Positions 3,080-50,191 of a DNA stretch of 64,000 nt are shown here, piece by piece. Below the pieces are notes generated by a model. That model saw nothing but the letters and a program-made list of their open reading frames with translations, was not told the origin of the DNA and did no database searches. The DNA comes from Tubulanus polymorphus (Eukaryota > Animalia > Nemertea). The translations under genes and the position numbers were made by a program. The number at the start of each line of letters is the position of its first letter. The first letter of the stretch is position 1. The stretch is taken from contig NC_134030.1 in the NCBI RefSeq assembly GCF_964204645.1, positions 355,355 to 419,354 of the forward strand. Direction: 5' to 3'.

Positions 3080-3630
3080 AGACACCAGGTGGAGCTGCTG
3101 ATTGTTGACACACCAGGTGGAGCTGCAGTCTGTCGACACCAGGTGGAGCCACAGTCTGATAAGAACTGGAAATCCTTGCGTTGTTTTAACTGGCCGATAT
3201 CGATGATATCAGTCTCTGTTGACACCAGATGGAGCTGCAGTCTGTTGACACACCAGGTGGAGCTGCAGTCTGTCGACACCAAGTGGAGCCACAGTCTGAT
3301 TAGAACTGGAAATCCTCGTGTTGTTTTAACTGGCCGATATCGATGATATCAGTCTCTGTTGACACCAGATGGAGCTGCAGTCTGTTGACACACCAGGTGG
3401 AGCTGCAGTCTGTCGATACCAAGTGGAGCCGCAGTCTGATTAGAACTGGAAATCCTCGTGTTGTTTTAACTGGCCGATATCGATGATATCAGTCTCTGTT
3501 GACACCAGATGGAGCTGCAGTCTGTTGACACACCAGGTGGAGCTGCAGTCTGTCGACACCAGGTGGAGCCACAGTCTGATTAGAACTGGAAATCCTCACG
3601 CTGTTTTAACTGGCCGATATCGATGATCTC
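3080..3630. repeat. 140-bp tandem repeat containing the last codons and stop of BMPR2 (~4 copies)
   Basis: (T/A)AGAACTGGAAATCC at 3161, 3301, 3441 and 3581; the copy at 3581 is the coding end [15 protein letters not shown]. Confidence 0.9.
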
Positions 3631-6600
3631 ATCAGGTTTGAAATGATGTAATGAAATACTAGATTTACAGATGATGAAATGAGGTTGATCGGGGCCCGGG
3701 CCCGGGTCCGTGTTTGATCCCATTATGCGATCGTCGTACAATGAGAAACGTCCTGTTGTTTTAGTTGCTAGGTGACACGGTGTTTTTACTCTGTGTTTCA
3801 CAGCGCTCAGCTGCTGCTGCTGCTGTTGTTGCTGTTTTTCGTTGTTATTCTCTTTGTCTCGTAGTTCATCGTTGAGTAACAATGAAGTCTGTTCAGGTTG
3901 TTGTTGGCGCGGCGATGCGGCTGCCGCTGTTGCTGGGTTGCGGTGTTTTATAAGCGGGGCCGTCAGTTCGCAGTTCGATTGTTGTAATTTAGCGACGCCC
4001 ACCTCAGCTATACCGAGCCGACCGTTGCTAGTAGCGACAGCCGGTGAATGTGTTTTAGATAACGGTAATAACGCCGGTCTGATTACGCAGCTCTGCTGTA
4101 ACTGATCGTTCGGACTACTGGTAGGACTCGGACTACTGGTAGGACACACTACAGCCGAACCATTGAGAAGCCGAACCTGCGTTTGGATTAAAGGTTGTTT
4201 TTGATGTTGAAGTAAATTAGATTTAGAATAATCAGTTCCTAACTGGTTATGATAATGAGATTGACCGGTGGCTCCCTCTGGTGGCGCACGAGACTGATCA
4301 GTGGCTCCGCCTGGTTGTGCTTGAAACCGACCGGTGGCGCCACCTGGTGGTTGTTGAGACTGACCGATGGCTCCACCTGGTGGTTGTTGGGTGTGACCGT
4401 TGCTTCCGCCCGGTGGTTGTTGAGACTGACCGACGGCTCCCCCTGGTGCTAATTGAGACTGACCGGTGGCTCCACCTGGCGATGGTTTACAGTTTTTATC
4501 CGATATCAAACCGTTAAATGTTTTAGCAAACGGATTTAAAAATGAGAATTTAAAACCGTTCAGTTTATTAGTCGTCTGTTGTTGTCTGTGATTAGTTAGT
4601 TTAACACGAGCTGCGTTCACGTCAGATTTAGTTGCTCGGTAACCGTTACCGGGTCGATTAGATTGTTTAGGTCTAACGACCGGAGGGTCGGTGGATACTT
4701 GATTCTGTAAGAACGGAATCGGTCTCTGCGTCTGCTGATTTAATAAATCATTTTGAACGAGAGACGAGTCTAAATTATCGTTAGTCGTCGTCATAGCGAC
4801 GTCCAATAAATCGTACCTCCGTTCGGCGTCTAACATTTCGACCCTAGTGGCGCCATCTATGAGTAAAACGTTACCTCGTACGGTAAGTTCCTCGTCGCTA
4901 CGTTTGTGCGTGTTTAATTCCAGCGTAGGATTCTGTCCTTTATAATTAGATTGCACTACGGCGACCGTTGCCGCGGTGACCGGTGCGGTATTGTTACTAC
5001 GGAGATCGGTTGACGGGTACGGTTCAGATGGTGATAGAGTTGTTTCAGCAGTAGACTCCGATACACTCTGTTCCGCGCCGAACGACCCCGGGTGGTGAAT
5101 CTGATGTAAATCCATATATGGTCGATCGATGTTTGTATTTTTATCGAGATCTCGCGTCTGATTGGTCGGTACTAGATTACGAAACATGACACTATTATCG
5201 GGTAGTCCACTGTTACCGTAGGGGTGCGAGGTAGGCGTTGTACCTGTAATATAGAAAAATAGTACATTTACTGATCCGTGATTGGTCAACGCATGAAATA
5301 CTGATCCGTGATTGGTCAACGCATGAAATACTGATCTGTGATTGGTCAACCCATGAAATACTGATCTGTGATTGGTCAACACATGAAATACTGCAGTGTG
5401 ATTGGCTGATACACGAAATACTGCTGTGTGATTGGCTAATATTTACCTCTATATTTCACATCCCATAAAGTGCTAATCTCAATGAATCTTTCCTCTACGC
5501 AGAGAGCTGTTAATCTCGCTTCACCATCCTGATCCCAACAATCATCTATTGTCTCCTTTAGCAACCGTATCGCCTAGCAACACAATAATCATCACATTAT
5601 TTGAAATGTTGAGTTGAAATTGTACGATTTGTACGAACCCTGGATCCAGTAACTGTGGAACCCTGGATCCAGTAACTGTGGAACCCTGGATCCAGTAACT
5701 GTGGAACCCTGGATCCAGTAACTGTGGAACCCTGGATCCAGTAACTGTGGAACCCTGGATCCAGTAACTGTGGAACCCTGGATCCAGTAACTGTGGAACC
5801 CTGGATCCAGTAACTGTGGAACTCTGGATCCAGTAACTGTGGAACTCTAAATCCAGTAACTGTGGAACTCTGGATCCAGTAACTGTGGAACTCTGGATCC
5901 AGTAACTGTGGAACTCTGGATCCAGTAACTGTGGAACTCTGGATCCAGTAACTGTGGAACTCTGGATCCAGTAACTGTGGAACTCTGGATCCAGTAACTG
6001 TGGAACTCTGGATCCAGTAACTGTGGAACCCTGGATCCAGTAACTGTGGAACTCTGGATCCAGTAACTGTGGAACTCTGGATCCAGTAAATGTGGAACTC
6101 TGGATCCAGTAACTGTGGAACCCTGGATCCAGTAACTGTGGAACTCTAAATCCAGTAACTGTGGAACTCTGGATCCAGTAACTGTGGAACTCTGGATCCA
6201 GTAACTGTGGAACTCTGGATCCAGTAACTGTGGAACTCTGGATCCAGTAACTGTGGAACTCTGGATCCAGTAACTGTGGAACTCTGGATCCAGTAACTGT
6301 GGAACTCTGGATCCAGTAACTGTGGAACTCTGGATCCAGTAACTGTGGAACTCTGGATCCAGTAACTGTGGAACTCTGGATCCAGTAACTGTGGAACTCT
6401 GGATCCAGTAACTGTGGAACCCTGGATCCAGTAACTGTGGATGATGAAGTGTGGATGATGGAATGTGGAACCTTACCTCGTTAGAATCCCTCCAAGCGGG
6501 TGGATAAAGAGGACGACGTTTATTACGCGAAACTAATAACTGCATTTCCTCCAGCGTTGGATGAGTTCCCAGTTCACTGTGGAACGGCGCTTCATATTCA

Positions 6601-8739
6601 TTTACTGGTTGACCTACATTTATATAATAATTAACCAGTTGTTAACCAGTTGATCTACATTTATATATAATTAACCAGTCGATCTACATTTATATAATAA
6701 ACCAGTTGTTAACCAGTTGATCTACATTGATGTATAATAAACCAGTTGTTAACCAGTTGACCTACATTTATATATAATTAACCAGTTGTTAACCCGTTGA
6801 TCCCCATTTATATAATTAACCAGTTGATGTACATTTATATATAATTAACCAGTTGATCTACATTTATATAATCAACCAGTTGTTAACCAGTTGATGTACA
6901 TTTATATAATTAACCAGTTGATCTACATTTATATAATTAACCAGTTGTTAACCAGTTGTTCTACATTTATATATAATTAACCACAGTTGATCTAGAACTT
7001 GTTAACTTATCGAGGCATTTACACACATTTCGGCCGGTTCTGATTGAAAGTAATCTGATTATACAATTCCTGAATCAATAGAGAGTATTCTGGTTGAAAA
7101 ACCAACACCCCAGAACAGAACGCTTTTCCAGAATCAGAATTGTATTCCGGTTGAAATGAACGTAACCAGGACGAGAATTCAGGAATCGATAGAGCTTATT
7201 CCGGTTGAAATGAACGTAACCAGGGCGAGAATTCAGGAATCGGTAGAGCTTATTCCGGTTGAAATGAACGTAACTAGGGAGAGAATTCAGGAATCGGTAG
7301 AGCTTATTCCGGTTGAAATGAACGTAACTAGGGCGAGAATTCAGGAATCGGTAGAGCTTATTCCGGTTGTAATGAACGTAACCAGGGCGAGAATTCAGGA
7401 ATCGGTAGAGCTTATTCCGGTTGAAATGAACGTAACCAGGGAGAGAATTCAGGAATCGGTAGAGCTTATTCCGGTTGAAATGAACGTAACCAGGGAGAGA
7501 ATTCAGGAATCGGTAGAGCTTATTCCGGTTGAAATGAACGTAACCAGGGAGAGAATTCAGGAATCGGTAGAGCTTATTCCGGTTGAAATGAACGTAACCA
7601 GGGCGAGAATTCAGGAATCGGTAGAACTTATTCCGGTTGAAATGAACGTAACCAAGGCGAGAATTCAGGAATCGGTAGAGCTTATTCCGGTTGTAATGAA
7701 TGTAACCAGGGCGAGAATTCAGGAATCGGTGGAGCTTATTCCGGTTGAAATGAACGTAACCAGGGCGAGAATTCAGGACTCGGTAGAGCTTATTCCGGTT
7801 GAAATGAACGAAACCAGGGCGAGAATTCAGGAATCGGTAGAGCTTATTCCGGTTGAAATGAACGTAACCAGGGCGAGAATTCAGGAATCGGTAGAGCTTA
7901 TTCCGGTTGAAATGAACGTAACTAGGGAGAGAATTCAGGAATCGGTGGAGCTTATTCCGGTTGAAATGAACGTAACCAGGGCGAGAATTCAGGAATCGGT
8001 AGAACTTATTCCGGTTGAAATGAACGTAACCAAGGCGAGAATTCAGGAATCGGTAGAGCTTATTCCGGTTGTAATGAACGTAACCAGGGCGAGAATTCAG
8101 GAATCGGTGGAGCTTATTCCGGTTGAAATGAACGTAACCAGGGCGAGAATTCAGGACTCGGTAGAGCTTATTCCGGTTGAAATGAACGTAACCAGGGCGA
8201 GAATTCAGGAATCGGTAGAGCTTATTCCGGTTGAAATGAACGTAACCAGGGCGAGAATTCAGGAATCGGTGGAGCTTATTCCGGTTGAAATGAACGTAAC
8301 CAGGGCGAGAATTCAGGAATCGGTGGAGCTTATTCCGGTTGAAATGAACGTAACCAGGGCGAGAATTCAGGAATCGGTAGAGCTTATTCTGGTTGAAAGC
8401 ACCGGCCAGAATTCCGCAATTGAAAAGAAATCGATCGAAATCGGGAAAATAAATTACCTTGATATAAATCTACACATCTTGAACACACTTCCCACAGAAC
8501 TAATCCTAATGCATAAATATCTATTTGTTTTAAAGATGCTTCGCAGTCTCTGAGATTGACAGCGCCATCTAGAACTTCAGGAGCCATATACCTCAACGTA
8601 CCAACCTACAATCAATCAATCAATCAATCAATCATTAGAACAGTGGGGGTGTGGTTTTAGAGGTACTGGGTGTGGCTTAGATTGAGATTGACAGCACCAT
8701 CTAAAACTTCAGGAGCCATATACCTCAACGTACCAACCT

Positions 8740-8784
<45 letters not shown>

Positions 8785-8887
8785 AGAACAGTGGGGGTGT
8801 GGTTTTAGAGGTACTGGGTGTGGCTTAGATTGAGATTGACAGCACCATCTAAAACTTCAGGAGCCATATACCTCAATGTACCAACCT

Positions 8888-8920
<33 letters not shown>

Positions 8921-11750
8921 AGAACAGTGGGGGTGTGGTTTAGAGGGACACCAGAGGTGTGGTCTAGAGAAGAGATGGGTGGAGTTTAGAGAAGCGTTGG
9001 GGGCGTGGTTAACTTACATCAATCAATGAAGTTTGTTCAGTATTATCGTCGTGTCCCGTTCTGGATAAACGTGATCCGCTGATGCACATCGCGAAACCAA
9101 AATCAATTATTACGCAACTTAAATCCGGTTTTACTAAAATATTCCTCGAGTTTAAATCCCGGTGAGCGATTACCGGTTTAAATTTATCTGCAAAAATAGG
9201 ATGAAAACGATTAGTACAATTAGTTCATTCTCTGATAAGGTTCCGGGTACCTGCGTTTACATCCTCACTTGCCAGGGGTCACCCCCGAACTCGCTTCCAC
9301 AAGCGCCCCCTGGCTGCACCACGATGTATGTTTTCTTTATTGACTCTGGTCGGCTAGTAACCGACTCCAACTACTCGTGAGGTCAAGGGGTTCGGCGAAC
9401 AGCTTTAGCGTTGTGGGTTCGAATCCCTTGACGGGTGAAGATGCTGCATGTAGTACTTACCTCCGATCAGCTGATCAGTATGCAAATGAGCTAAACCGTT
9501 AGCTATCGAGTGACACATCCTCTGGCAAGTGAGCCAGTCGACGGTGTTATTCTTCAAATACGAATTCAACGAACCGAGTTCTAAATAGGTTAAAACAATA
9601 ACGAATTGTGATTCACCGTCTGGAGTGAAACGTTCCTCCGATCCGTAGAACTTCAATAAACTCTCGTGATTCATAAACGGTAGCGTGTAAACGGTTCGTT
9701 CGTTTACGTAATACTGTCTCTGAGCAGACGTAAATACCTTCACCGCTACCGTATGATCGAACAGCGCCCCCTGCCAGATATCGCCGAAACGACCCGATTG
9801 TAACAGTTTATCCAGTTTCAATCGACTCAACTCGTAACACGGACTCGGCGGGTCAAGGTCGTCGTCGTCGCTGCGCGTTCGCCGTAAAGGGTCAAGGTCG
9901 CATTTACGCCTGCTCAACCATAGGCGATAAAATAAATAAAGTAAAACTACGACGACCGTTACCCCGACGACGGACAACAGAGCGATTATGATCGTTTTCT
10001 CTCGGTAATTAGCGTGGTCCGGTAAGAATTGAGCTGAAATTTTCGAAAAGAAAATTATTTCATCAACACAACTTCAAAAACTGATTGTCCCGGAGAAGTG
10101 ACTGCAGAATGACTGTGGGGGGGGGGGGGGTGGTTCCAGGTTGTAATGTAAGGGGGGGGGGGGGGGGTGGTTCCAGGTTGTAATGTAAGGGATGGCTCCA
10201 GGCTGTAAGGGATGGCTCCAGGTTGTAGGGGGTGGCTCCAGGCTGTAAGGGAATGCTCTAGGCTGTAAGGGATGGCTCCTAGCTGTACTTGATGGCTCCA
10301 GGCTGTAAGGGATGGCTCCAGGATGTAAGGGATGGCTCCAGACTGTAGGGGGTGGCTCCAGGCTGTAAGGGATGGCTCCTAGCTGTACTTGATGGCTCCA
10401 GGTTGAAAGAAATGGTTCCAGGTTTAATGGAGATGGCTTGAGGCTGTGAGGGATGTCTCCTGGCTGCTAGGGATAGCTCCAGGCTGTAGGGGGTGGCTCC
10501 AGGTTGTAAGGGATAGCTCCAGGTTGTAAGGGAAGGCTCCAGGCTGCTGTCTGATATCGATACTTACTAGCGGTAGATTTAGGTTTATGAGTTGGAGAGA
10601 ACAGCGCTGGTTTATATACATCAGAGACGTGTGTATTACACAGAGTTGTATTACAACAACAGAATCTTGCATCCTCTTTACTATATGGCTTATCATTAAC
10701 GCAACGGTTACTGCGACAATTCTGTTTATCGGGATGATCCCAGCAACCTACCAAATATAATACAACACTACAGTTACTAACAGTGGCGACACCTGATGGA
10801 TGCCGATAGAACAATCACACAAACCTCTTTTGATCCAGATGATAGAATCGTTGTTGGCGCCTCCCAGTTTCCAGTACGAGAAACAAAAACTGTGTCCACT
10901 TTCACCGGTACAGTGAACAGTCTGTCCGTCGGGTAACACTTTACCGGTACTGGGTTCAGCTCCGAGACCCATTGTCGGGTTCACCACCGATCCATCTGAG
11001 CTCGTTTTAGCGCTTTCATAGAAACGACATACAGTCGACCTGACTCCTATAGGAACCACTGAAATATATAGAAATTACATCCATTTCAGGTATTTAGGCC
11101 TTCGCCCTTAGAGGTATTTACTTCATCGGCAGGAACCTGATGACGCCATGAGACTCTGCCACGTTCCTCCCTCGGCAGGGATTCGAACCTGATGACACCG
11201 TGAGACTCTGCCACGTTCCTCCCTCAGCGGCAGGGATTCGAACCTGATGACATCGCGAGACTCTATCACGTGTTCCTCCCTCGACAGGGATGGGAACCTG
11301 ATGACATCGTGAGACTCTGCCACGTTCCTCCCTCAGCGGCAGGGATTTGAACCTGATGACATCGTGAGACTCTGCCACGTTCCTCCCTCAGCGGCAGGGA
11401 TTGAACCTGATGACATCGTGAGACTCTGCCACGTTCCTCCCTAAGCGGCAGGGATTCGAACCTGATGACATCGTGAGACTCTGACACATTCCTCCCTCAG
11501 CGGCAGGGATTTCAACTTTATAAGACTCTGTCTCTCTGCTAGTAGAGGGGATGATGGCCTGAGCGGGGGGACAGTGGTGTAGGATCAGGTATTCTATGGT
11601 CTAAAGAACTGCTTATTGGACACACTTGACTGATCTCTGTCCAAGATGGAAGATCTCGATTGCGGCAACTAATCACAGCAACTTACCTGTCAAAACTAGA
11701 GCTATCCCCGTGAACCACAAACCACACCGAATATTCACTATCAAAACCAT
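3580..11750 (-). CDS. BMPR2: BMP type II receptor Ser/Thr kinase (BMPR2/wishful thinking-like), 9 coding exons
   Basis: Exons 11687-11750, 10825-11058, 10568-10747, 9461-10033, 9018-9187, 8458-8605, 6477-6613, 5447-5573, 3580-5243; all GT-AG and in phase. Signal peptide, Cys-rich ectodomain (GCW...CCCNTTLCN), TM after [13 protein letters not shown], kinase motifs [57 protein letters not shown], and the long C-terminal tail typical of BMPR2/Wit. Confidence 0.93.
5270..5440. repeat. 30-bp intronic minisatellite
   Basis: ACTGATCCGTGATTGGTCAACGCATGAAAT ~5.5 copies filling most of the last BMPR2 intron. Confidence 0.9.
5636..6440. repeat. 23-bp intronic minisatellite (~35 copies)
   Basis: TGGATCCAGTAACTGTGGAAC(T/C)C tandem array. 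Confidence 0.95.
6605..6995. repeat. AT-rich repeat containing copies of the BMPR2 exon 7 splice acceptor
   Basis: Irregular ~30-42 bp units CCAGTTGA(T/C)CTACATTTATATAATTAA; the real acceptor TAG|GTCAACC at 6613-6616 is the last unit in transcription order. Confidence 0.85.
7140..8400. repeat. 54-bp intronic minisatellite (~23 copies)
   Basis: TTATTCCGGTTGAAATGAACGTAACCAGGGCGAGAATTCAGGAATCGGTAGAGC units; explains the 465-aa ORF. Confidence 0.95.
8551..8950. repeat. 132-148-bp repeat duplicating the BMPR2 exon 6 acceptor and first ~55 nt of exon (3 copies)
   Basis: TGTAG|GTTGGTAC(G/A)TTGAGGTATATGGCTCCTGAAG on the - strand, starting at 8885, 8737 and 8605; unit length varies with a (CAAT)n tract. 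Confidence 0.92.
10190..10545. repeat. 20-bp intronic minisatellite
   Basis: GGATGGCTCCAGGCTGTAAG variants. Confidence 0.85.
11130..11515 (-). repeat. ~55-bp minisatellite with tRNA A/B-box-like motifs (~7 copies)
   Basis: - strand unit contains TGGCAGAGT and CAGGTTCGAATCCC. Confidence 0.8.
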
Positions 11751-13628
11751 TGTCTATAGACTGTTCGGTAACTGCGTAAATCTATAATATCAGCAGGATC
11801 AACCCTGTAATCACCGCACCACGCACTGAGTACTCAGTCATTCTGACACACCAGAACCAGCAAAAAACAACATCCAACTTTCACTTGTCTTTAGACGCCG
11901 ATTCCATATTTCACAGGGCCTCAACTCGACTGTCGACACGTCGGTTCAATAGAACTGCGCCTACTATATGAGATCTGTAATTGTTTCATTGTTCTACGCC
12001 GTTCTAGACGCATATTTTACTAGATTTGCAGCAATTTCCGTCAAAAATGAAGACACCTTCAATGTCTGATCATTGAGCTACTTCCATTATCGAAAAGGGG
12101 AGGTAGGTTTGACTTTGTAATCTTTGATTTACTTTCAAATCAACTTCATAGACTAATCCACTAATATTCCACCCTTAGTCTGCTATTTACTCAATTAAGT
12201 AAGTTTTGTGAAAATTTCGTCGTTTTCTGAGATGAGAAACTGCTTCCAGACTTAATTATTTACATTTTATCATTGAAGCCACTTTCCCTATTAAGGTCGA
12301 GTCTAATGTCTGGAGATGCCGTCGATCGTAGTTCGACGTGTCTGCCGTGAGAGGGAGTGCATAATCACCATAAAATAAAAAAAGGCATAAAAAATGTATG
12401 TGACTCGTTGTAAACGTCGTCGAATTGCTGCAAATATCCGAGTTAGATAACTCTTGAAAACAATTCCGATAAATGAAGTTTTAAATTCATTTATATTTCG
12501 CGTTTCGATGTTTTTCCTCCGTGTTGTACTCGCTAAAAGTGCAAAAACGCCTACGACTCATCCGCCATCTAACGTAATGCGATCGCATGAACTGACATTA
12601 CTCCAGAGTTGATAAACAAACGATGTAAACGGTTTTTTCGGACTAAAAATAATAATTTTCATCTATCTTTCCTACACTGGTGATTATAAATGGTTATAAT
12701 GAGTTAAAACAGTGCGTACGTGGCTTCACCGAAAACTCGCATGCCACAGGAAGAATCTATTTTATCTTGAAAATGAGGTTCGAATCCCATATATCATGCC
12801 TCGCTTCACTTTTTTTTCATGAATCTCTAAATTCTATTGATTTAGATGATGGAAGCTTTGGGGTCAGATTCCATTTCCGGAAAACGCCAAGAATAGTCCA
12901 ATTAGTAATTATCTATAAACATGCATGTGGAGCTTGAAGTACTAAGTAGTTTAACAAGTTTCAGGTGATCCACATATAAATGCCCACATTAAGTAGCCCC
13001 TATTTGCAGTGCAGCTTAGTTTTAAGTTCCAGTTCCTGCTGGCAGCTAACAGTGTGCGGGCAACAGTTTAAAAACCAGGAGGGTCAATGAACAATCCAAT
13101 ACTAGGATCAGTCTTCGAGCTGAGTCCAGACTAGTCAGTAACCTGTCTGTGGTTTAGTTTCACAATCGGATATTTTAACAAACCACATATTTTGGTATAT
13201 TGGTATAAGTCCATCCGATTATAAAAAGCTTACCAACGATTAGGTAACTAAGTAGGTCCAGACCTGTTTAGTGTGCGGCAACAGACAGCTCATAATAGGA
13301 TTGATGGACAATTCAATAGGGTCAGCCTCAGAGCTGGGTCAAACTCCTGTTTCACAGTGGACTTCCGAGACCGTGGTCCAGTCTTGAGGTTAAATAAACA
13401 ATCCTCAAGTCCAGTCTGGGATCTATAGTCAAGATTTAGCTGCTTACAGTATTCGAGAAAGAAATCCTTCCTTTGGTCCCTTCATGAAATCCAGTGAAGT
13501 CTCGAAGATAAATAACTCCAGAAGAAAGACGAAACAAACAAATGAATGTTTTACTATGGAATCACAACTTTATTTTGTTACAACTAAGAAATCGCTCTGC
13601 TCAGGCTGTACAATAACTCTAAACTATA

Positions 13629-13644
13629 CCAGTAGATGGCGCTA
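13629..13644 (+). promoter_or_regulatory. CTCF-like motif
   Basis: CCAGTAGATGGCGCTA matches the CTCF consensus; lies between BMPR2 and the ATP synthase c coding region. Confidence 0.45.
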
Positions 13645-14236
13645 GTGGTGGTGATCGGGTGATATTCAAGATTTTACACTCTTAACGACGACGCCGCTTC
13701 AATCAATAAATTAATTTAACATTTTTTTTTAACACTAGCACATTACAGAGATGTATTTAGTAATATGTACATGCATATATTTATGGTCCACAGTTTTCGT
13801 ACCTAGACGTCCTGCTCCGCGAGCGGGCGACCGTCATTAAGAACAATAATTCTTGCTCACTTCGAAAGTTTTCGGAAATATATATTACCCAATGTAGTAA
13901 CGTTAGTGGTCAATCAAATCTAAACTATCAAATCATTTCACAAACCTCGCAAAATACTTATTATTCATCTCTGCTTTAAAACAATTAATTAATGATGTTC
14001 GGCCTAAATTTTCGTCTAAACTTTTGACATAGTTTTTTGTTTTTTTACGTTTAATATCAAAAACGTGGTTATTTTTTTCTACGAGAAGAGCTCGACCCCG
14101 GTTTTACAACGCCCGACTCTTCAAACGCACAAAAAAAAAAAACCCAATAATAATAATCATTAATTTATACACAATATTATCAATTAATAGAATCGTTTGC
14201 TAGTTTTATTTTTTCGTTTAGGCTTCGAGCGTCGGA

Positions 14237-16656: not shown

Positions 16657-16934
16657 GATAGTAGATGATTTGATTGCTCCGACTGCGGGTGGGTTACAAG
16701 CCACTGAAATATACAGAATGACCTTCACTATTTATAATCGCCGACAATTTCCCTTCAAAATTAAGATTTATAAAACGAACTATTCTCATAAAATCAAAGA
16801 AAACGATATAATAAATCTTATCACAGATATTCACCTACAGATGATTAGTAGAAATGTGTTATTTGAACGGATTAGAGGAGTAATTTGAAAGCGACTGCCG
16901 GCTTACCTAAAATATCACCGATAGAGAGTCGAGA

Positions 16935-17167: not shown

Positions 17168-17245
17168 AAAGATTTGGGGAGCCCCAGCCTCAGCCTCAGC
17201 AGCATCAGCAGCATCAAGAGAGGGCTGGATGACGACCCGAGGAGC

Positions 17246-19414
17246 ATGGCTGTGTTTTTAATGAACACATGCAAGTTCAATAGTTGTGGGATGAATTTCT
17301 CGACTCTGGGTGACCTCATTCAGCATATTGAGGACACTCATATCGGTAAATATCAACACTCTCAGTTTGACAGGTGTCACTGTCAAAACTTTTAGATTTT
17401 GACAGTTGTTCAAATGTTCTAATTTTGTTGTTTGTTATTTAAGAGTCGGATCCACGAGTTATAGAGAAACAGGAATTACAGCAGCCTCCATCTCTTCCAT
17501 TAAGTTATATACTCAGGTTATTTTGTGAGGCTGGTGGTACAAAACGCGTTGAGGCCGCCGCTGCCGTCAGTAATGAGTTGAAGAAACGACCACGAGGTGG
17601 CGCTGTCTCACCGGCTCGTAGCGTTACCCCGACCGGGAGCGAGCTGGACGACGATGATGTCGTTGCCGCCAGCGACGACGAGGATAGCGATGATTCTTGG
17701 ACGACGCAAGAAGAATTTTCATCGGAAGTTATTCTCAGGTGGGTGTTTTAACCCTTGGCTCCGGACAAATGGCGTCAGTAAAATGCGAGGGTTTTTACAA
17801 CTCCTCGATTCCTTTAACTCCTCGAGCTGCAGTTGCTCTAAAGTTGGTTAGAGTTTCTCAGTTGATAGCTGACATTGTGACAATTAGAAGTTCATTGTTG
17901 CTATTGGCCGGTTATCTTTAACCAACTTTTGAGCAACTGCAGCCCTTTAATGGAAAATGTTTTAAATGTGCTTGAAACTCCTTCAATTTGAGCAAAATGT
18001 CAGAATTCCTTCAATTTTTTAGAAATATACAATCAGACATGTTTGTAGTTGTATAGTAAACCACCTAAATCAGTACAGTTGAAACAAGGATCTTTTTGTT
18101 AGCCAATTAGGAGGTTACAGAATTAGAAACAGAGTTTAGTATAGTGGATAGAAATGTGCTCACAAAATCACCCAATAACCTACTGAGATAAACACTACCG
18201 ATTAGGAGGAGTTTACTGACGTAATTCTGGGATATGATTAATTATTAATTATAGTATGATTATTATTATTATTAATCATAATAAGATCATTATTTTTATG
18301 ATTATAATGAATTATAGTATGATTATTATAATTATTAATCATAATAAGATTATTATCATTTTTATGATTATTATAATTATCATGAATTATAGTTTGATTA
18401 TCATTATCAATTGTAGTATAGTATCCTGATGATGATTATGATTATTATAATTAATTATAGTATGATTATTATTATTATTAATCATAATAAGATTATTATC
18501 ATTTTTATGATTATTATAATTATCATGAATTATAGTTTGATTATCATTATCAATTGTAGTATAGTATCCTGATGATGATTATTATGATTATAATTAATTA
18601 TAGTATGATGGCGAATATAAAAGATGTGAGCGATAAACCGTTTGCGTGTCCAGTTCCCGGTTGTAAGAAACGATATAAAAATGTGAATGGAATCAAATAT
18701 CACGCGAGACACGGTCATCGTAAAGACGCACGATTCGTGTAAATATTCATAACCGTCATTCGTTCATTGTTTCGTCGTTTACCTCGTCGTTTCCATGGTG
18801 ATTTATTTTACGTTTTCAGAGTGAAAAAAGCGTTCAAATGCAAATGCGGTAAAAGTTACCGGTCGGCTCAAGGTTTACGCAATCATCAACTGCTTTATCA
18901 CCCGGTAACAACGCTTCTTAAAACAGCGACGACGCAACAATCAAATACAGCTACAACAACGCAAGCCGTTATCGCTACGGCAACCGTTTCTCAATTAGTA
19001 ACGCAGCCGACGCTGGCGTTATCGATACCAGCCGTTTCCTGTATCACTCCGCTTCCTATTCCTCCGCAACCGCAAACACTCGTCACAACAATGGCAGCAC
19101 CGCTTAGCGTAACCATGACTACCGACAATCACCCGTCGAATACGAAGAATACGACGACGACGATTAATCCGGGATTAGGGATTAATCCTGGATTAGGGAT
19201 TAATCCGGTGGGGGGAGGAGTAGGAAACGTGAATAATATACAAGCTCACGTTCAGGCAGCACACGCACTAGCTCACGCACAGGCTCAGGCTAAACAGGTC
19301 GTACAGGCCATTCAAAACGCTACAAATAACGCTTTAACTACTACAGCGCCACCTACAATAACAAACCTCGTACAGTCAGTATCATCAGCTATAGAACAAA
19401 TAGTAGCCGAATAG
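17246..19414 (+). CDS. JAZF1: JAZF1-like C2H2 zinc-finger protein
   Basis: Exons 17246-17345 (MAVFLMNTCKFNSCGMNFSTLGDLIQHIEDTHI), 17444-17738 (QELQQP...DSDDSWTTQEEFSSE), 18604-18738 (KPFACPVPGCKKRYKNVNGIKYHARHGH) and 18820-19414 (FKCKCGKSYRSAQGLRNH plus a T/Q/A-rich tail). Confidence 0.93.
17826..17943. mobile_element. Short palindromic MITE
   Basis: GCTGCAGTTGCTCTAAAGTTGGTTA...TAACCAACTTTTGAGCAACTGCAGC. Confidence 0.7.
18230..18610. repeat. AT-rich repeat containing copies of the JAZF1 exon 3 acceptor
   Basis: AATTATAG|TATGAT near 18250, 18311, 18451 and the real site at 18601-18609. Confidence 0.75.
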
Positions 19415-19705
19415 AGGGGGGTCTTACAGCGCCACCTACAATAACAAACCTAGTACAATCAGTATCATCAGCTATAGAACAAATAGTAGCCGAATAGAGG
19501 GGGGTATCGCAGCGCCCCCTACAATAATAAACCTAGTACAATCAGTATCATCAGCTATAGAACAAATAGTGGCCGAATAGAGGGGGGTCTTACAGCGCCC
19601 CCTACAATAACAAACCTAGTACAATCAGTATCATCAGCTATAGAACAAATTGTAGCCGAATAGAGTGGGGTCTCGCAGCGCCCCCTACAATAACAAACCT
19701 AGCAC
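19343..19705. repeat. 83-bp tandem repeat containing the JAZF1 C-terminus and stop (~4.4 copies)
   Basis: (A/G)CAGCGCC(A/C)CCTACAATAA starting at 19343, 19426, 19509, 19592 and 19675; the first four units run on to GCCGAATAG. Confidence 0.93.
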
Positions 19706-19944
19706 AATAGACACTGAGAGGAATCTGAGTAGAAAGGGTCCCGGGCCTTCCTGTGGAGTGTGCTGCCCCCTGTGAGCTAAATGAATAAGGTACAGACCTG
19801 TTTGTATTGTATGAACAGTTACAATGAGCTGATCAAACAGGGAACAATATTCACCAATAGGTGTCTCTGTCTAAGTGTTTATTACATGTTGTGTGTAAAT
19901 TATTGATAGTCGCTGAAATATTACATTCATTGTTCTCACTTTCT

Positions 19945-22213: not shown

Positions 22214-22318
<105 letters not shown>

Positions 22319-30810: not shown

Positions 30811-30819
30811 ACTCTTATG

Positions 30820-37500: not shown

Positions 37501-40500
37501 TGAAAGGCCTCGAGAATAAGCTTGGGCCTCGAGAATAATCTTGGGCCTCGATAAAAGGCTTGGGCCTCGAGATAGGCTCGGACCTCGGGAATATGCTTGG
37601 GCCTCGAGAATAAGCTTGGGCCTCAGGAATATGCTTGGGCCTCGGGAATAGGTCTGAGCTCCGTGAACGGGCTTGGACCTCGAGAATAGGCTTGGGCCTC
37701 GGGAGATGCTTGGGCTTCGAGCTTCGTGAACGGACAGGCTTCGAGGCCGAACCTCGGCTTTTTGATTAGGCCTCAGCTTCCATATTGGGCTTGGGTTTGC
37801 TTTGCGATTGGGCCTAAATCTTTCTACATTTGACACTGTACAATATTTCTACAATTTTGATAGGATAAATAGATGAATAAAAAATAATATGTTATCTATA
37901 TATTGTAGACGATATTTCTACATTTAATACCAATTTGATAGATATATAGTATAATGATGATATGACGTGTATATATTGTAGAGGAGGCGTTCCACGTGAT
38001 TGTGTTTATTTGTATCCTCATCTATTTCCCTCCACATCCGCCATTACCGCCGACAATATCAGCATCTACAGATCGCGTCAGTTTCATACGAGGCCTCGGT
38101 CAGGCTTTCTGGTAAGTTATTTTCTTTTCACAAAAAAAGTATATTTCAGCACAAAATTAGTGTTCGCAACCGTCGTACCATTGACCATGGCCTGCATCCG
38201 AGCAGTTAACCAGTCACCAATAACCCTAACCCTAGACTCGAACTTGCCACCTCCGGCATGCAAGCCGAGCATACTAACCCCTAGACCATAGACCTGTAGC
38301 GTCTGACAGAGTTTGTAAATTTCTCTGGTCAGTGTGGTGTCTGGTGACCAGTCAGGTGTGATGACTGGTGACCAGTCAGGTGTGGTAACTGGTGACCAGT
38401 CAGGTGTGATGACTGGTGACCAGTCAGGTGTGGTAACTGGTGACCAGTCAGGTGTGATGACTGGTGACCAGTCAGGTGTGGTAACTGGTGACCAGTCAGG
38501 TGTGGTAACTGGTCACCAGTCAGGTGTGGTAACTGGTGACCAGTCAGGTGTGGTGACTGGTGACCAGTCAGGTGTGGTGACTGGTGACCAGTCAGGTGTG
38601 GTGACTGGTGACCAGTCAGGTGTGGTAACTGGTCGTGTGGCCATTCACTACATATCACTCTTTTCTTGAAGAATATTAATGACTCTTTGCTCCCCAACTT
38701 CCAAACTAACTAATTCAATTGTTTACCAGATGAAAATCTCGGACTCATTTTGTTTGTATTTTTAGTCACGCACGATTGTGGGTAATGGCAATACCATACG
38801 GATTAGGGTTAGGTGTTTATAACTGTTGGAACGCGATATTAGATGTGAATTTGAGCCCGTTAGGAATACAGCAGTCTGAAGCAGGCTGGCTCGGGTTTTA
38901 CGCTGTAATGGCCGGCTGTACCGGAGCCCTTATCGTGTCCTGGTAAGCTAAATTATCATTATTATTAGTGAATTATTACTATTTAGATGAAAATGATTAT
39001 CTGAAAATTATTACGGTAAACAAAATTCGGTCTATCATTTGGATAAGTCGTCACATTACTGAAGTCATCTCTATTTTTGAGTCTCAATTTGTATTTCTAA
39101 TTCAATTTACTAAGTGTAAGTCATCATTTGTATATAAGTCATCAACAAATCAATGAATTTGGTCCCAACTGCAAACGCATTTATCACAAAATGATTATAT
39201 CTTTGTTTGTGTTTTGTGCTGTAGGATTTCCGATCATTTCCTGGGTCACATGAAGATATTTTGTATCGTGTTGTTTATTGGTGCTGGTGGCTCCGCCTTG
39301 TGGAGCATGTTACTTATTGGTCAATATATACCGTTCAATTCTGGTAAGATAATAATCACCAGTCTCAATGAGACGATTAATTAGAAAGCAAATATCATTT
39401 GAATTCGGAATTTTCTGTTAAGGCTAAACAAAAATGATACCTTGTCCGCAACGGCCGGGTTATTTTTGTAAAATATGATTAAATTTGTAATCAATTTATT
39501 TCTGATGCCGGGTCTGTTATATGATAAAATAAATCACGATTAAAACAAAAAGTAATGCACAGGGTAGATAGGCGGCTGGACCGGGTCAACTTTTAAACTC
39601 AGCAGAAATGAGAATCATGGTATCGATATTTTTTGCCTAAGATTTAATTATATTTTCTCTGACTCTCCTTTCGCAGGTGAACTATATACATCTATAATAG
39701 TGGGCGGTTTATTGATATACACGTGTATAGCACTGTTTTTTGAAATGGCTTGTGAATCGGCGTATCCGATAGCGGAGTCTGTGATCAGCGGCATGTTTGC
39801 TTTACTAAACAATATCTGTGGAGTGACGTTCCTTCTACTCTTCTATATTCCTAATATCGGTAAGTATACGACTAATGAACTCGTGTTCAATATTTATTAT
39901 GTTCTAGATACGGAATGGATGAACTGGTGTTTTATAATGAACTCGTGTTCAATATTTATTATGTTCTAGGTACGGAATGGATGAACTGGTGCTTTATAAT
40001 GAACTCGTGTTCAATATTTATTATGTTCTAGGTACGGAATGGATGAACTGGTGCTTTATAATGAACTCGTGTTCAATATTTATTATGTTCTAGGTACGGA
40101 ATGGATGAACTGGTGTTTTATAATGAACTCGTGTTCAATATTTATTATGTTCTAGGTACGGAATGGATGAACTGGTGCTTTATAATGAACTCGTGTTCAA
40201 TATTTATTATGTTCTAGGTACGGAATGGATGAACTGGTGTTTTATAATGAACTCGTGTTCAATATTTATCATGTTCTAGGTGCGGAATGGATGAACTGGT
40301 GTTTTATAATGAACTCGTGTTCAATATTTATTATGTTCTAGGTGCGGAATGGATGAACTGATGTTTTATAATGAACTCGTGTTCAATATTTATTATGTTC
40401 TAGGTACGGAATGGATGAACTGGTGTTTAACGGGTGCTCTGTTTATCGCTATACCGATATTAATGTTCGCTAAAGTCACCTATAACCGATTGGAACTGGA

Positions 40501-40624
40501 TGTCCCGGATGCGGATGAAGTACTTCACCATGGTAACGAACATCACAATGAGAATCATATACAGTACGATGAATACGGACGCAGTAAATCGATATCTTCA
40601 GAATCAGAAATTCACTTTCTTTAA
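34534..40624 (+). CDS. SLC49A4: MFS transporter, SLC49A4/DIRC2-like (FLVCR family), 11 exons
   Basis: Exons approx. 34534-34921, 35467-35557, 36054-36217, 36345-36417, 36581-36642, 37216-37281, 37982-38111, 38766-38942, 39225-39343, 39677-39859, 40404-40624. Motifs: ETEPLL dileucine signal, VYGRRWYIL, QGCVWNSFGPI, SATWFPANGRTTATAI, FFEMACESAYP, WMNWCL, YNRLELD. Confidence 0.9.
34973..35080. mobile_element. Short palindromic MITE
   Basis: GGCCCGGTTTTATAGACTGGTTT...AAACCAGTCTGTAAAACCGGGCC. Confidence 0.75.
36969..37078. mobile_element. Short MITE (GGNCCAGTTT-terminus family)
   Basis: GGACCCAGTTTCACAAAAAG...CTTTTTGTGAAACTGGACCC. Confidence 0.7.
37505..37720. repeat. ~20-bp degenerate intronic minisatellite
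   Basis: GCTTGGGCCTCGAGAATA variants. Confidence 0.8.
38328..38635. repeat. 24-bp intronic minisatellite (~12 copies)
   Basis: CTGGTGACCAGTCAGGTGTG(G/A)T(A/G)A units. Confidence 0.93.
39872..40428 (+). repeat. 62-bp tandem repeat, 9 copies of the SLC49A4 last-exon acceptor
   Basis: TTATGTTCTAG|(G/A)T(A/G)CGGAATGGATGAACTG with junctions at 39908, 39970, 40032, 40094, 40156, 40218, 40280, 40342 and 40404. Confidence 0.95.
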
Positions 40625-41434
40625 ATAGAACCGACGCACCCTCGACCCCCTGCCCCATCGAGATCCAGCCCAACGCAGGGAAACAGGGAAACAAACATGT
40701 TTGATCGAGGAAAATTTGTTTCCCGAAATCATGGTTTCTGTATGCCATAAGGCTGGGAGGTCGGGGAGATCCCAGCAGGGGAGTGAGGGGGAATGGGCGG
40801 AGAGGAGGGGGGGGGGGGGGTGCCATGGTATGGTGTGAATAGTAATGAAAAAAACTTATCTGGACATGTGATTACAACTAATATACCGTATATAATGTAA
40901 TGAACGGATATCTAGCTGTTAAAAATCAAATTCAATCCTCGCTTCGTGCAATAAAAATGAAATTTCACAAATATTTCTTTAAATTTTCTGGGAAATATTT
41001 TACACTGAATTCAATCAAATTATTTTGTAAATATGACAGTAATTGTGAATAATGAATTGTACATAACCAAAAGAATTGAAACTAAACATATTTTTATACC
41101 GCGTGTAAATCGAAGAATATATCTGTGATTCTAGTTTGTAAATACGCCGTAATGTGGCGCTGTTTCCAGAAACAGTTTTTAGAAATTTGTTTGGCTTCAA
41201 TAAACAGAATTTTTTAATGATATTATTTTTGTTGAGTTCGATCACCACATCGGAAGTGGCCCACCAGATATAGACCGGGCGTGCTCCAAAAGTTTCTGGT
41301 CGGATGGTTGGTCCGGCCGACTAGAGAAACTCGTAGGACCGATGGTCACTTAGTGGTCACTTTATACAGATATGATACGGACCGCCGAGACACACCCGGT
41401 CGCTACGGGCTAGAGGGCTGCAGTAAGACTACTG

Positions 41435-41508: not shown

Positions 41509-41571
41509 TGGAGTGCCTGGTTAGAATAAAATGCTGGGATATTTAATTTCATGAAAAAAAAAACTAATTCG

Positions 41572-41643
41572 TGCGTTCGCCGGGAATCGAACCCGGATCC
41601 ATTGCTTGGAAGGCAACGATGCTAACCTTTACACCACGAACGC
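41572..41643 (-). tRNA. tRNA-Gly (TCC)
   Basis: GCGTTCGTGGTGTAAAGGTTAGCATCGTTGCCTTCCAAGCAATGGATCCGGGTTCGATTCCCGGCGAACGCA folds into a cloverleaf with anticodon TCC; followed by a T10 Pol III terminator. Confidence 0.95.
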
Positions 41644-43944: not shown

Positions 43945-44357
43945 AGTGGTCAGCAGCAGTAGTCAGTAGTGGTCAGCAGTGGTCTGTAGCGGTCAGCAGT
44001 AGTCATTAGCAGTCAGCATTGGTCAGTAGTGGTCAGCAGCGTTCAGTAGCAGTCAGCAGCGGTTTGTAGTGGTCAGTAGTGGTCAGCAGTAGTCAGTAGT
44101 GGTCAGCAGTAGTCAGTAGTGGTCAGCAGTAGTCAGTAGTGGTCAGCAGTAGTCAGTAGTGGTCAGCAGTAGTCAGTAGTGGTCAGCAGTAGTCTGTAGC
44201 GGTCAGCAGTAGTCATTAGCAGTCAGCAGTGGTCAGTAGCAGTCAGCAGCGGTTTGTAGTGGTCAGCAGCGGTCAGCAGTAGTCAGCAGTAGTCAGTAGT
44301 GGTCAGCAGTAGTCAGTAGTGGTCAGTAGCGGTCAGCAGTAGTCAGTAGCGGTCAGT
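43945..44357. repeat. 10/20-bp minisatellite immediately 5' of the PTPMT1 ATG
   Basis: AGTGGTCAGCAGTAGTCAGT units ending ...GGTCAGT|ATG. Confidence 0.9.
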
Positions 44358-46217
44358 ATGGTTTTAATGCAGATTGTTCCTCGTATAGCTTTCTACCCGT
44401 CGTTGCTGTATAACATCGTTCTAGAGAAATTATCATTCCACAATTGGTACAACAGAATCGATGAACACATTATACTGGGAGCTCTTCCCTTTAGACATAT
44501 GACTGAACAGGTATGTATCTTCTAATCCATCCTGTCTCTCTCTCCAGGTCCCCTCAGGTCTTCTCATTTTCGATAGAATCCTGGAGCTGCAGTTTCTAGA
44601 AAATTGGTTGAAATCAACCGGTGGATAGGTTGACATAGTGACTGTTAAAATTTCATTGTTACTATGGTATTTATCCACCGGTAATCCACTAGCTGCATCC
44701 GTTATAATCCATCCTGCCCCCTCCTCCCCAGGTCTCCCCTTCTTCTCACTTTCAACTCTGTTATTTTGCAGCTGTCTACAGAAGAGAATGTTAAAGGTGT
44801 TATAACGATGAATGAAGAATTTGAAACCAGATTTCTGGTCAACACTCAACAGGTGAATAATCTAAATCCTCTCACAGATTACACCAGTGTAATCTGTGAG
44901 GTTACATCGGTGTAATCTGTGAGATTCAGATAACAATGATGTAATCAGTGAGATTACACCAGTGTATTACACCGAAGTAATCTCACAGATTACAACAATG
45001 TGATCTCGCAGATTGCATTGTTGTTATCTCACAGATGAAACCTATGTAATCAGTGGTGTTAAAAGCAGTTTTTGATCGCTGCGTCACTTGTCGACTTTTG
45101 ACAGCTTCTAATGTTGCTGCGGTGAAATTACTTCAATTTTGTCAAAATCATAGTAAAAAAAAATTCATTCAGTAAATTAATTGGCGCAGCTCTTGCCGCT
45201 GCAGTCGCCTCGGTTCCAACGCCACTGGTTATTGAACAGATCATAGCAATGTAATCTCATAGAGCTGATTGAATCAATCAATAAATGATTGTTTGATTGA
45301 CAGGAGTGGGAGGAGAATGGAATTAATTGATAAATGATTGTTTGATTGACAGGAGTGGGAGGAGAATGGAATTAATTGATAAATGATTGTTTGATTGACA
45401 GAAGTGGGAGGAGAATGGAATTCATTGATAAATGATTGTTTGATTGACAGGAGTGGGAGGAGAATGGAATTAATTGATAAATGATTGTTTGATTGACAGG
45501 AGTAGGAGAATTGAATTAATTGATAAATGATTGTTTGATTGACAGGAGTAGGAGGAGAATTGAATTAATTGATAAATAATTGTTTGATTGACAGGAGTGG
45601 GAGGAGAATGGAATTAAACAGCTCAGATTGGATACCGAAGATTTTATCAATTCCCCGACCCTGACGAACATCATCGAAGGGATGAAATTTATCGAACAAA
45701 TTAAACGTGACAATGGGACAGTGTATGTACATTGTAAAGCAGGTCGAACGCGTAGCGCTACGATAGTAGCGTGTTACATCATACAGGTACGCCATCTACT
45801 GGTCTAAAAAACAACTACCTACGTACCGCCCTCTTCAACACACTATAACTAGCTACTCGACTAGAGCCATCTAGTGATTATTCCTGAAACTACGCTACCC
45901 GAAACAGTGAATGCATCAGTAGTGCCCTCTAGTATTCAAAGTGTGAACTACCCCCTCCTCAGTAGTGCCCTCTAGTATTCATAGTGTGAACTACCCCTCC
46001 TCAGTAGTGCCCTCTAGTATTCATAGTGTGAACTACCCTCTCCTCAGTAGTGCCCTCTATTGTCTATTTTCAGAAGGTCGGCTGCAGTCCGACGGAAGCC
46101 GTCGATTTCATACGCGGAAAACGATCGCATATTTTACTCCGTCAAAAACAAATGGATTCCATCGAAGAATTTTACAATACGATTAAAAATAAACCCGATG
46201 TAAACGATACTACGTGA
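44358..46217 (+). CDS. PTPMT1: Mitochondrial phosphatidylglycerophosphatase / protein-tyrosine phosphatase 1
   Basis: Exons 44358-44510 ([11 protein letters not shown]...[16 protein letters not shown]), 44772-44852 ([15 protein letters not shown]), 45595-45786 (catalytic [14 protein letters not shown]) and 46074-46217 ([15 protein letters not shown]). Confidence 0.94.
45278..45617 (+). repeat. 49-bp tandem repeat, 7 copies of the PTPMT1 exon 3 acceptor
   Basis: TTGTTTGATTGACAG|(G/A)AGT(G/A)GGAG... with CAG at 45301, 45350, 45399, 45448, 45497, 45543 and 45592. Confidence 0.95.
45917..46060. repeat. ~43-bp intronic repeat with CTCF-like core
   Basis: CAGTAGTGCCCTCTAGTATTCA(T/A)AGTGTGAACTACCC, ~3.3 copies. 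Confidence 0.85.
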
Positions 46218-47017: not shown

Positions 47018-47300
47018 AGGGACCTTCAATAAAGTACGTATAATTCTCAACTCACTGCCCTGGTTATTGATCCCCGGAGTGGTGTGCAAGTATACTTTAT
47101 CAATGACCCCTACTGTACCAATGACCTGGAACCAGTCCGTTATATCTCTATCGCGTGCAACTGCTGACAACCAGTCTAATAAGCGTTGATAATAAATAAA
47201 TAATTCTCTTTTTTTAAGTTCATATGTAAAAATTCTGGTCTACAGTGACTCAGACGTAACTATAGCAACAGTTACTACGGCGATGACGATGGATATTGTT

Positions 47301-48915
47301 TTACTGTTCGATGGCTGGGGTTTTGTTTTTCTTATCGAGAGCCCAGAAGTATTTGACGGCACCGATGCAGCCGATATCGTTATAGTTAAACACGCAGATA
47401 CCGGCAAAACCGAGCGCCGCAAATATCAATATCATCCATTCACACACCGCAGGGGGCAGCACTTTACGATGGATGTAGTCAACGGCAACAGTGTCTAAAC
47501 CCCTACAATATAGAATGAAATAAATATCAGTATTGTAACACTAATCCAGCTGTTAGTATAGTGAGGGGAGGGAGAGGGGAGGAATGGGGAGGGAGGGGGG
47601 AGGGGAGGGAGGGGGGAGGGTAGTGAGAGGAGAGGGGTGGGTAGTGAGAGGAGAGGGGAGGGTAGTGAGGGGGGAGGGGAGGGAGGGAGAGGGGATGAGA
47701 GAGAGGAGAGGGAGGGAGAGGGTGTATACATACCAGTAACCATGTAACACTAATCCAGCTGCTAGTATAGGGAGGGGAGGAATGGGGAGGGGAGGAATGG
47801 GGAGGGGAGGGAGAGGGTGTATACATACCAGTAAGCATGTAACACTAATCCAGCTGCTAGTATATAATCCATTGCTGGATGCACATATATGAATGATGCT
47901 GGTATTAAAGGTATCAAAGCTGTAGCTAAATATCTCTCGACTTTCCAGTGAACAGATGGTCTCAGGTGTTGTTTAGCGGGATCTCCCCAAACCACTGAAA
48001 ATACACATCAAACATGTCTATTCATCAGTGGATTCTAGATTTCAGAACGACCCACACTCCGTCTATATTCACACTGTCGTAACTTAAGCCCGAAAGTTCG
48101 TACAGAAGAACTAACTACATGAATATGCAATCGGCCCCTGGGACCAGTTGCACAGTCGTGACTTAAGTCCAAAAGTGGTCTTAAATCTAAAAACTGGTCT
48201 TAAGTTGTTAGATTGGCTATAGAACTAAGTTGGTCTGAGACTTGTCTTAAGTCTAAGCCATGACTGTGTAATCGGCCCTTGTTGCCAGGGATTCACAAAC
48301 AGAAATCAGTTGCCGAGGTCGGAATCGAGGTCGACCTGTTTCACTTACTTGGATCAGAAAATCGACTTTTCTCTTTTTTACTTAAAAACACATTTGTCGT
48401 ATGAATTCTGCGCTGTTGTGATGATTCAGCTGTACCCGCTACTACTGTTACTAATGGTAACGCCGGTCTACTTGTTACGGATGAGAATTTTGGCCTAAAA
48501 AGACCCGCAGTGCCAGTTGTCAGGCCGAACCCTGAAAATAGTGAAATATCAACCATATTAATACGTGTCAAGATCGACATCAGATCTGGAGATTGAGAAC
48601 GTGCAGGCCAGGGATAGAAATTGAGTCTGAGGATAAGGTGCATTCGGTAGAGAATGCAAGGTTCCAACACTACTGTCAGTGTCACTAGCACCAGTAGAGT
48701 AGGCACAGGCAGGAGTAAACGCCAAGGACGCAAGGTCAAATAAAAACCTATTTGTTACGCAACAACTTCGCATTGAGGAGTGAGAATAGAAATCGAAATT
48801 ATAAATATATAGAATATAGAATCAAACAGTGAAATATAGAGTTAATTGGTGTTTACGGTAACTAGTTACGGTGATATTTACCTCTAGAACCGAGACGAAA
48901 TACAAGACCGTTCAT
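47301..48915 (-). CDS. SDHD: Succinate dehydrogenase cytochrome b small subunit
   Basis: Exons 48882-48915 (MNGLVFRLGSR), 48349-48531, 47829-47994 (SVHWKVERYL...MDYILAAGLVLHAYW) and 47301-47502 (GLDTVAVDYIH...FNYNDIGCIGAVKYFW). Confidence 0.92.
47536..47865 (-). repeat. Duplicated SDHD exon end and splice donor within a purine/pyrimidine-asymmetric repeat
   Basis: TATACTAGCAGCTGGATTAGTGTTACATG(C/G)TTACTG|GTATGTAT at 47829 (real) and 47734 (copy); third partial copy near 47536-47560. Confidence 0.88.
48140..48278. mobile_element. Short MITE (GGNCCAGTT-terminus family)
   Basis: GGACCAGTTGCACAGTCGTGACTTAAG...CATGACTGTGTAATCGGCCC. Confidence 0.6.
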
Positions 48916-50150: not shown

Positions 50151-50191
50151 AGAGGATGTGCCGTGGAATATCAATTGAATCAATCGACACT

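Follow-up and report, generated by a model that had tools for sequence, protein, structure and literature searches.

Tandem repeats spanning exon boundaries and stop codons in a repeat-dense stretch of the Tubulanus polymorphus genome

Tandem repeats whose unit runs across an exon boundary have been described in amphioxus and in man. In amphioxus, the name 'mirages' was given to such boundary-spanning repeats in Adh3, as cited in PMC3087553; they were later found in the globins BflGb6/BflGb9, in troponin C and in PGBD5, with AG or GT kept and splicing undisturbed, and instability of array length was shown (PMC3087553, PMC3902484). In human F7, the first element of a 37-bp variable number tandem repeat (VNTR) in intron 7 spans the exon 7 donor, and the exon-proximal of the identical donors is used (PMC1557585). 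A related model, that of Rogers, likewise cited in PMC3087553, derives intron gain from tandem duplication of an AGGT-containing exon segment. Here, a 64,000-base window of the nemertean Tubulanus polymorphus (contig C6:355355-419354 of a 267.8-Mb genome; all positions below are numbered within this window unless a contig is named) was analysed, in which tandem arrays lie over splice sites and stop codons of BMPR2, JAZF1, PTPMT1, SDHD and a transporter-like gene called SLC49A4 below. With a probability of roughly 0.78, these arrays are ordinary local tandem duplications (minisatellites) in an unusually repeat-dense stretch near the contig end.

Open frames, together with GT/AG sites and phase, served to build the gene models, and identities were checked exon by exon. 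Decoys, i.e. further copies of a splice site, were counted by scanning with the authentic junction, and the sequence at all eight sites named in a preliminary description of this DNA was read directly. Arrays at exon boundaries and stop codons are real. Clear copies of the boundary were present at six of the eight sites (the BMPR2 exon 6 acceptor, the BMPR2 stop, the JAZF1 stop, the SLC49A4 last acceptor, the PTPMT1 exon 3 acceptor and the SDHD donor), each unit carrying 23-73 nt of adjoining exon; the other two claimed repeats, one at the acceptor of BMPR2 exon 7 and one at that of JAZF1 exon 3, proved weak.

At the BMPR2 exon 6 acceptor (array 8552..8950, minus strand, authentic first exon base 8605), the 148-bp unit runs from the end of the intron, where it includes a CAAT/ATTG microsatellite, through the acceptor and 53 nt into the exon. 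Two decoy acceptors, with first exon-like bases 8885 and 8737, are 98-100% identical to the junction over 50 nt; both keep the AG, and a stop is reached after 78 nt. The call made by Tandem Repeats Finder (TRF) at this site, 8609-8918, misses the exon part, and the array was therefore extended by eye. In the last intron of SLC49A4 (39873..40428, plus strand; donor G 39860, authentic acceptor 40404), a 62-bp unit present nine times joins 35 nt from the 3' end of the intron to the opening 27 nt of the last exon, giving eight decoy acceptors of 96-100% identity, with AG kept in all. The PTPMT1 exon 3 acceptor (45268..45617, plus strand, authentic first exon base 45595) carries seven copies of a 49-bp unit, of which 23 nt are intronic and 26 nt exonic; six of the copies are decoys. 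The SDHD exon 3 donor (47540..47864, minus strand, authentic last exon base 47829) lies in a 95-bp unit that occurs twice and holds the last ~35 nt of the exon together with the donor; the one decoy donor, at 47734, is 96% identical, and the CybS frame is kept by the first donor only. A partial third copy at ~47540-47570 stands directly before the acceptor (first exon base 47502). It reads …TATACTAACAG…, and two differences from the exon (TAGC to TAAC) give a perfect TACTAAC branch-site consensus ~50 nt before that acceptor.

Two arrays repeat a stop codon. In BMPR2 (3081..3631, minus strand, TAA 3580-3582), a 140-bp unit present 3.9 times contains the last 49 nt of the coding sequence (CDS), the TAA and 88 nt of 3' flank. 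The open frame closes in the copy that comes first on the gene strand, and the remaining copies lie in the 3' flank. In JAZF1 (19342..19708, plus strand, TAG 19412-19414), an 83-bp unit present 4.4 times holds the last 70 CDS nt, the TAG and 10 nt. At the weak BMPR2 exon 7 site (6614..6994, minus strand, acceptor at 6613), units of 27, 40 and 67 bp include an acceptor-like aaatgtag and ~13 exon-like nt; ten copies are 74-85% identical to the junction, of which seven keep the AG and three have lost it. At the weak JAZF1 exon 3 acceptor (18233..18609, plus strand, first exon base 18604), an AT-rich 143-bp repeat (2.2 copies) extends just 6-7 nt into the exon. A marginal ninth case is a 20-bp unit repeated 20 times in PTPMT1 (43954..44362, plus strand), which runs up to the start codon at 44358 and lies in the 5' untranslated region (UTR) or upstream of it.

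AG or GT is kept in every decoy of the clear splice-site arrays. All decoy acceptors that were translated in the incoming phase hit an in-frame stop, within 3-78 nt at both BMPR2 acceptors, SLC49A4 and PTPMT1 and within 34-145 nt at the weak JAZF1 site. The array units are unrelated between loci, with differing consensus sequences, and each continues into its own host exon. Since they are unrelated and carry the host gene's own exon sequence, each array arose locally, as had been proposed.

That the arrays were over-expanded, or made altogether, by repeat mis-assembly is close to negligible as an explanation. The contigs of the DNA run do collapse the arrays, ending ~30 nt inside each, and two array bins have zero depth. 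Against this, irregular substitutions and one indel distinguish the copies from one another, the arrays are entered from either side by DNA as well as RNA contigs, and like structures occur at unrelated loci; the arrays are moreover 0.2-1.3 kb in length, far below long-read length, assuming a long-read assembly.

The likeness to amphioxus mirages is close. In both, the unit spans the exon-intron boundary (10-160 bp in amphioxus, 27-148 bp here) and consists of the host gene's own sequence, acceptors and donors are both affected, AG or GT survives in many of the copies, and splicing of the mRNA still takes place at the authentic site. Splice site and host exon were found together in the units at BMPR2 exon 6, SLC49A4, PTPMT1 and SDHD, with exon parts of 53, 27, 26 and 35 nt, respectively; local origin was found as well, and exon-proximal splicing was seen in SLC49A4 and PTPMT1 only. 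Unlike the amphioxus cases, the present arrays also include stop-codon and start-codon arrays and are clustered where repeats abound, close to the end of a contig. The layout of the SDHD array, with the first element over the donor and a decoy donor of 96% identity, matches that of the human F7 VNTR, this layout being known from sequence; F7, in contrast, is one locus, affected at the donor only and tested by mutagenesis, whereas acceptors predominate here. As in the Rogers model, tandem duplication sets extra splice signals beside an exon and adds intron sequence, but existing introns are lengthened, no new intron position is seen and the conserved domain continues over the old boundary. A search of the literature on nemertean genomes, tandem repeats and introns yielded nothing on tandem repeats at splice sites. 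The suggestion that an undescribed system is at hand is not supported, since amphioxus mirages (PMC3087553, PMC3902484) and the human F7 donor case (PMC1557585) had already been described. A second animal lineage beyond amphioxus appears to hold many junction-spanning minisatellites.

The copy used in splicing was read from one sequencing run (X2), which was treated as RNA on the basis of its GT..AG joints and exon-only cover. The run is available as contigs, from which rare forms have been dropped, and covers two of the arrays, those of SLC49A4 and PTPMT1. At SLC49A4, a contig of depth 341 joins 39859 to 40404, the last of the nine acceptors, and the 30 nt past the joint include the bases that separate the last copy from the decoys. 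At PTPMT1, a contig of depth 2149 covers exons 1-2-3, with 44852 joined directly to 45595, which is again the last copy. No joints to decoys are listed among the X2 contigs for either gene, where low-level use could be missed. RNA that contains the SLC49A4 array is present (one bin with a summed depth of ~200, inflated by shared repeat words), and the PTPMT1 array itself is represented by a listed contig of depth 11. Bypass of the decoy acceptors in SLC49A4 and PTPMT1 is real, and the earlier claim that near-identical upstream acceptors are passed over, here up to eight of them, is borne out by these RNA-like contigs. Decoys and true site agree from -25 to +25 at the least (at least 50 nt), so whatever decides between them must be found further inside the exon or in the relative position of the copies. 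These two natural cases, in which 6-8 near-identical acceptors are cleanly skipped, are potential test constructs for 3' splice-site choice.

The bypass had also been held to conflict with selection of the first AG. Such a conflict is not supported: the first AG is counted from the branch point, and the units copy 23-95 nt of the intron 3' end, so each may contain a branch region and a pyrimidine tract of its own. Ratcheting through the arrays, a further proposal, was rejected as a general rule: a GT is regenerated only in SLC49A4 (tag/GTACGG, a partial donor match; the slash marks the joint) and weakly in BMPR2 exon 6 (tag/GTTGGT), and the junctions regenerated in PTPMT1 (cag/GAGTGG), BMPR2 exon 7 (tag/ATCAAC) and JAZF1 (tag/TATGAT) do not start with GT. 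An acceptor directly followed by a donor consensus (AG/GTRAGT) was not found at every step. The SLC49A4 decoys, which place an acceptor before GTACGG, are conceivable zero-length ratchet sites and to that extent resemble recursive splicing; the other arrays differ in that they regenerate no donor, no intermediates were seen, and the units measure 49-148 nt rather than tens of kilobases. Apart from the arrays, intron 3 of SLC49A4 (36218-37981, 1.76 kb) contains a perfect zero-length ratchet-like site, …catcag/GTGAGT at 36418, in a phase that permits recursive splicing; it may be due to chance.

Enrichment of arrays at boundaries was assessed by counting robust straddlers, defined as arrays with at least 20 nt on both sides of a boundary, and additionally with a lax rule of at least 5 nt. 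In the window, there were 6 robust straddlers vs 1.03 expected under a whole-window uniform null (P = 0.0003) and vs 2.66 under a within-gene null (P = 0.009); under the 5-nt rule, 9 were counted vs 5.66 expected (P = 0.06). The window had been selected for the pattern, so the excess within it carries a selection bias, and one of its arrays had been extended by eye. A sample free of this bias was obtained by a whole-genome profile search with Pkinase, Myosin_head and Kinesin, where introns were located by consecutive six-frame matches with adjoining profile coordinates, i.e. by interruption of the domain. The open-frame rule was relaxed, since profile matches ran into introns (25/65 pairs in the first pass), and one automatic lag-matching extension was applied to every array. 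Altogether 131 introns were modelled, 13 were dropped for poor splice scores, and 118 were kept, corresponding to 236 boundaries; their length quartiles were 126, 372 and 561 nt, and they contained 27 arrays that made up 7.4% of intron bases.

No boundary excess was detected over these 236 boundaries: 2 straddlers of at least 20 nt were found vs 2.27 expected (P of at least 2 = 0.70), and 3 vs 5.17 under the 5-nt rule. Direct reading placed these cases at a myosin donor (x3), at a kinesin donor (x2) and at a kinase acceptor. Arrays over junctions are thus found across the genome about as often as expected by chance, and the count of 2 vs 2.27 leaves the boundary-associated duplication process put forward earlier without the tandem-repeat enrichment that it had been expected to produce. 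One myosin gene of the sample (L041:107-298; C5:17.69 Mb) contains a perfect 95-bp duplication (x2) that starts at the G of the donor GT and lies on the intron side only, with no exon sequence.

Tandem repeats are unusually frequent in the window as a whole. TRF reported 53 distinct arrays over 12,579 of the 64,000 bases (19.7%), 26 of them in or beside six genes; in a comparison with 249 kb of other fetched loci, the share was 19.5% vs 4.3%. The window begins 0.36 Mb into its contig. Pooled by distance to the contig end, the repeat fraction of 99 loci was 12.5% at <1 Mb, 9.3% at 1-2 Mb, 5.2% at 2-4 Mb and ~2% at >4 Mb, a roughly six-fold drop in sampled tandem-repeat density from contig ends inward; the per-locus rank correlation of repeat share with end distance was not significant (rho -0.16, P 0.13). 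These values suggest a strong subterminal minisatellite domain in the genome. Once the arrays are collapsed, little intron is left (1415 nt for the 8 introns of BMPR2, and 48 nt for the last SLC49A4 intron), so most tolerated duplications of 50-150 nt in these genes must include a junction.

The reading in terms of ordinary local duplication can be put as follows. Local tandem duplication would occur at a high rate in the region. A duplication wholly within coding sequence would persist only if its length is divisible by three, and an intronic one would be harmless. One that crosses an exon edge or a stop codon would be tolerated because one copy stays joined to the remaining exon, and the surplus copies would turn into extra intron or 3' UTR; the array could then grow via slippage or unequal exchange. 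In splicing, exon definition is the most likely means of choosing the copy: factors on the real exon would bring U2AF/U2 to the acceptor closest upstream and U1 to the donor closest downstream. This agrees with the exon-proximal rule for identical donors in human F7 (PMC1557585). In BMPR2 and PTPMT1, mis-spliced RNA with a stop may also be removed by decay, as an added filter. We infer that selection filters the duplications, that exon definition guides the choice of copy and that mRNA decay takes part. All four CDS-internal arrays of the window have a period divisible by three (18, 33, 18 and 12), in keeping with the selection filter. Among them is an array in the tail exon of BMPR2 (4256..4479, minus strand), 33 bp in period and present 6.8 times. 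It lies in frame, as does a second repeat of this exon (4110-4145, 18-bp x2), and gives an 11-residue peptide repeat in the C-terminal tail of the receptor. Two further BMPR2 arrays, at 5269-5435 and 5635-6441, are wholly intronic. No junction-seeking duplication process is needed.

Several observations weigh against this reading. Under a within-gene null on array-collapsed genes, the window still holds 6 robust straddlers vs 2.66 expected (P = 0.009), and a true excess of roughly two-fold at boundaries may exist; the bias-free sample, with 2 events only, rules out just an enrichment above ~three-fold. The evidence on splicing comes from a single RNA-like run in contig form and from two arrays only. 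In SLC49A4, it is the last intron that holds the decoys, and exon-junction-dependent decay should not mask misuse there; the bypass therefore seems to occur at the choice of splice site. Finally, the first SLC49A4 decoy, at 48 nt from the donor, stands in an otherwise native context and is still unused, although it may be too close to the donor, the shortest sampled introns being ~76 nt long.

The preliminary description had gone further and inferred a duplication process aimed at exon boundaries, with a spliceosome equipped to bypass the copies or to ratchet past them, as possibly an undescribed splicing or intron-evolution system. This is very improbable. The in-window excess of straddlers over both nulls is in its favour, as is the clean bypass of 8 and 6 decoys in the RNA-like contigs, and the SLC49A4 decoys regenerate G/GTACGG, which is weakly donor-like, so that stepwise loss of 62-nt units is conceivable there. 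An excess is nevertheless absent from the 236 bias-free boundaries, the junctions regenerated in PTPMT1, BMPR2 exon 7 and JAZF1 are not donor-like, splicing plays no part in the stop-codon arrays, and amphioxus and human F7 offer known examples of such structures that are spliced normally (PMC3087553, PMC1557585). The repeated splice sites and stop codons thus call for no new duplication machinery and no unusual spliceosome, and a tempting false lead is removed.

A functional role of the decoy arrays, be it in unproductive splicing and tuning by mRNA decay, in slowing intron removal or in lengthening introns that are too short, is improbable. It would fit the retention of AG or GT in 7/10 BMPR2 exon 7 copies and in all decoys of the clear splice-site arrays, the 7.4% repeat content of the sampled introns vs 2.3% for single-exon kinase-hit loci overall, and the location of 26/53 window arrays in or beside six genes. 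The arrays are, however, 93-99% self-identical, so intact sites need no selection; RNA with the PTPMT1 array is minor (11 vs 2149), and stop-codon and 5' UTR arrays suit the neutral model equally.

In a further alternative, minisatellite birth might be concentrated in transcribed introns near chromosome ends and combined with a strict exon-proximal acceptor rule, mirroring the 'oriented scanning' of donors in F7. The rule would act at the splicing step itself, given the eight decoys passed over in a last intron, where decay could not mask misuse. We regard this alternative as unlikely. If it were true, the genome would supply many natural constructs for dissecting 3' splice-site selection, and arrays might be a main route of intron lengthening or of the birth of new exons and introns. 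Gene predictors are likely to stumble on the arrays, and mis-called exon starts are to be expected in the annotation.

The gene identities were assigned as follows. BMPR2 (~3580-11760, minus strand), a BMP type-2 receptor, had BMPR2 as its best solved relative (2e-30), followed by ACVR2A (4e-21), and the kinase profile (PK_Tyr_Ser-Thr) continues over its exons with positions 1-124, 123-155 and 168-203. PTPMT1 (44358-46217, plus strand) matched 3rgo at 1e-15. In SDHD, the exons 47829-47994 and 47301-47502 (minus strand) carry CybS profile positions 25-76 and 78-133, and JAZF1 exon 3 gave a zinc-finger match. For the transporter-like gene at 34534-40625 (plus strand), a search of two single exons returned no Pfam match, and SLC49A4 is a putative name, taken from a reading of its exons. 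At the 20-bp array before the PTPMT1 start codon, the RNA-like run reached a summed depth of 10,000-18,000, inflated by shared repeat words, and the mRNA contig starts inside the array, at 44298; the array is therefore transcribed, probably as 5' UTR.

Other features of the window were recorded alongside. Arrays of 76-78-bp units at 1261-1608, 2189-2358 and 30818-31358 contain a motif like the T-arm of tRNA (GGTTCGAACCCGG / GGTTCGAATCCCTGCC), which is also present in a 55-bp unit array in BMPR2 intron 1 (11132-11516). These look like a dispersed tRNA-derived element prone to forming tandem arrays, unlike the local arrays at junctions. A tRNA-Gly(TCC) gene lies at 41571-41643 (minus strand) between SLC49A4 and PTPMT1, and the DNA run shows a depth spike of ~720 vs ~30 there, as expected for a multi-copy tRNA. 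Small polymorphisms between samples were seen, the DNA run being without 3 and 4 bases at 40773 and 40807 and the RNA-like run differing at 45649-45650. Three tandem copies of a ~2.8-kb unit occupy 49400-57700 (minus strand), each with an open frame of 346 aa (50195-51232, 53060-54097 and 55894-56931); the frames are hydrophobic and receptor-like in look, and may represent a recent local gene triplication. Comparable long single-exon frames are located at 25620-26924, 28321-29613 and 31946-33043.

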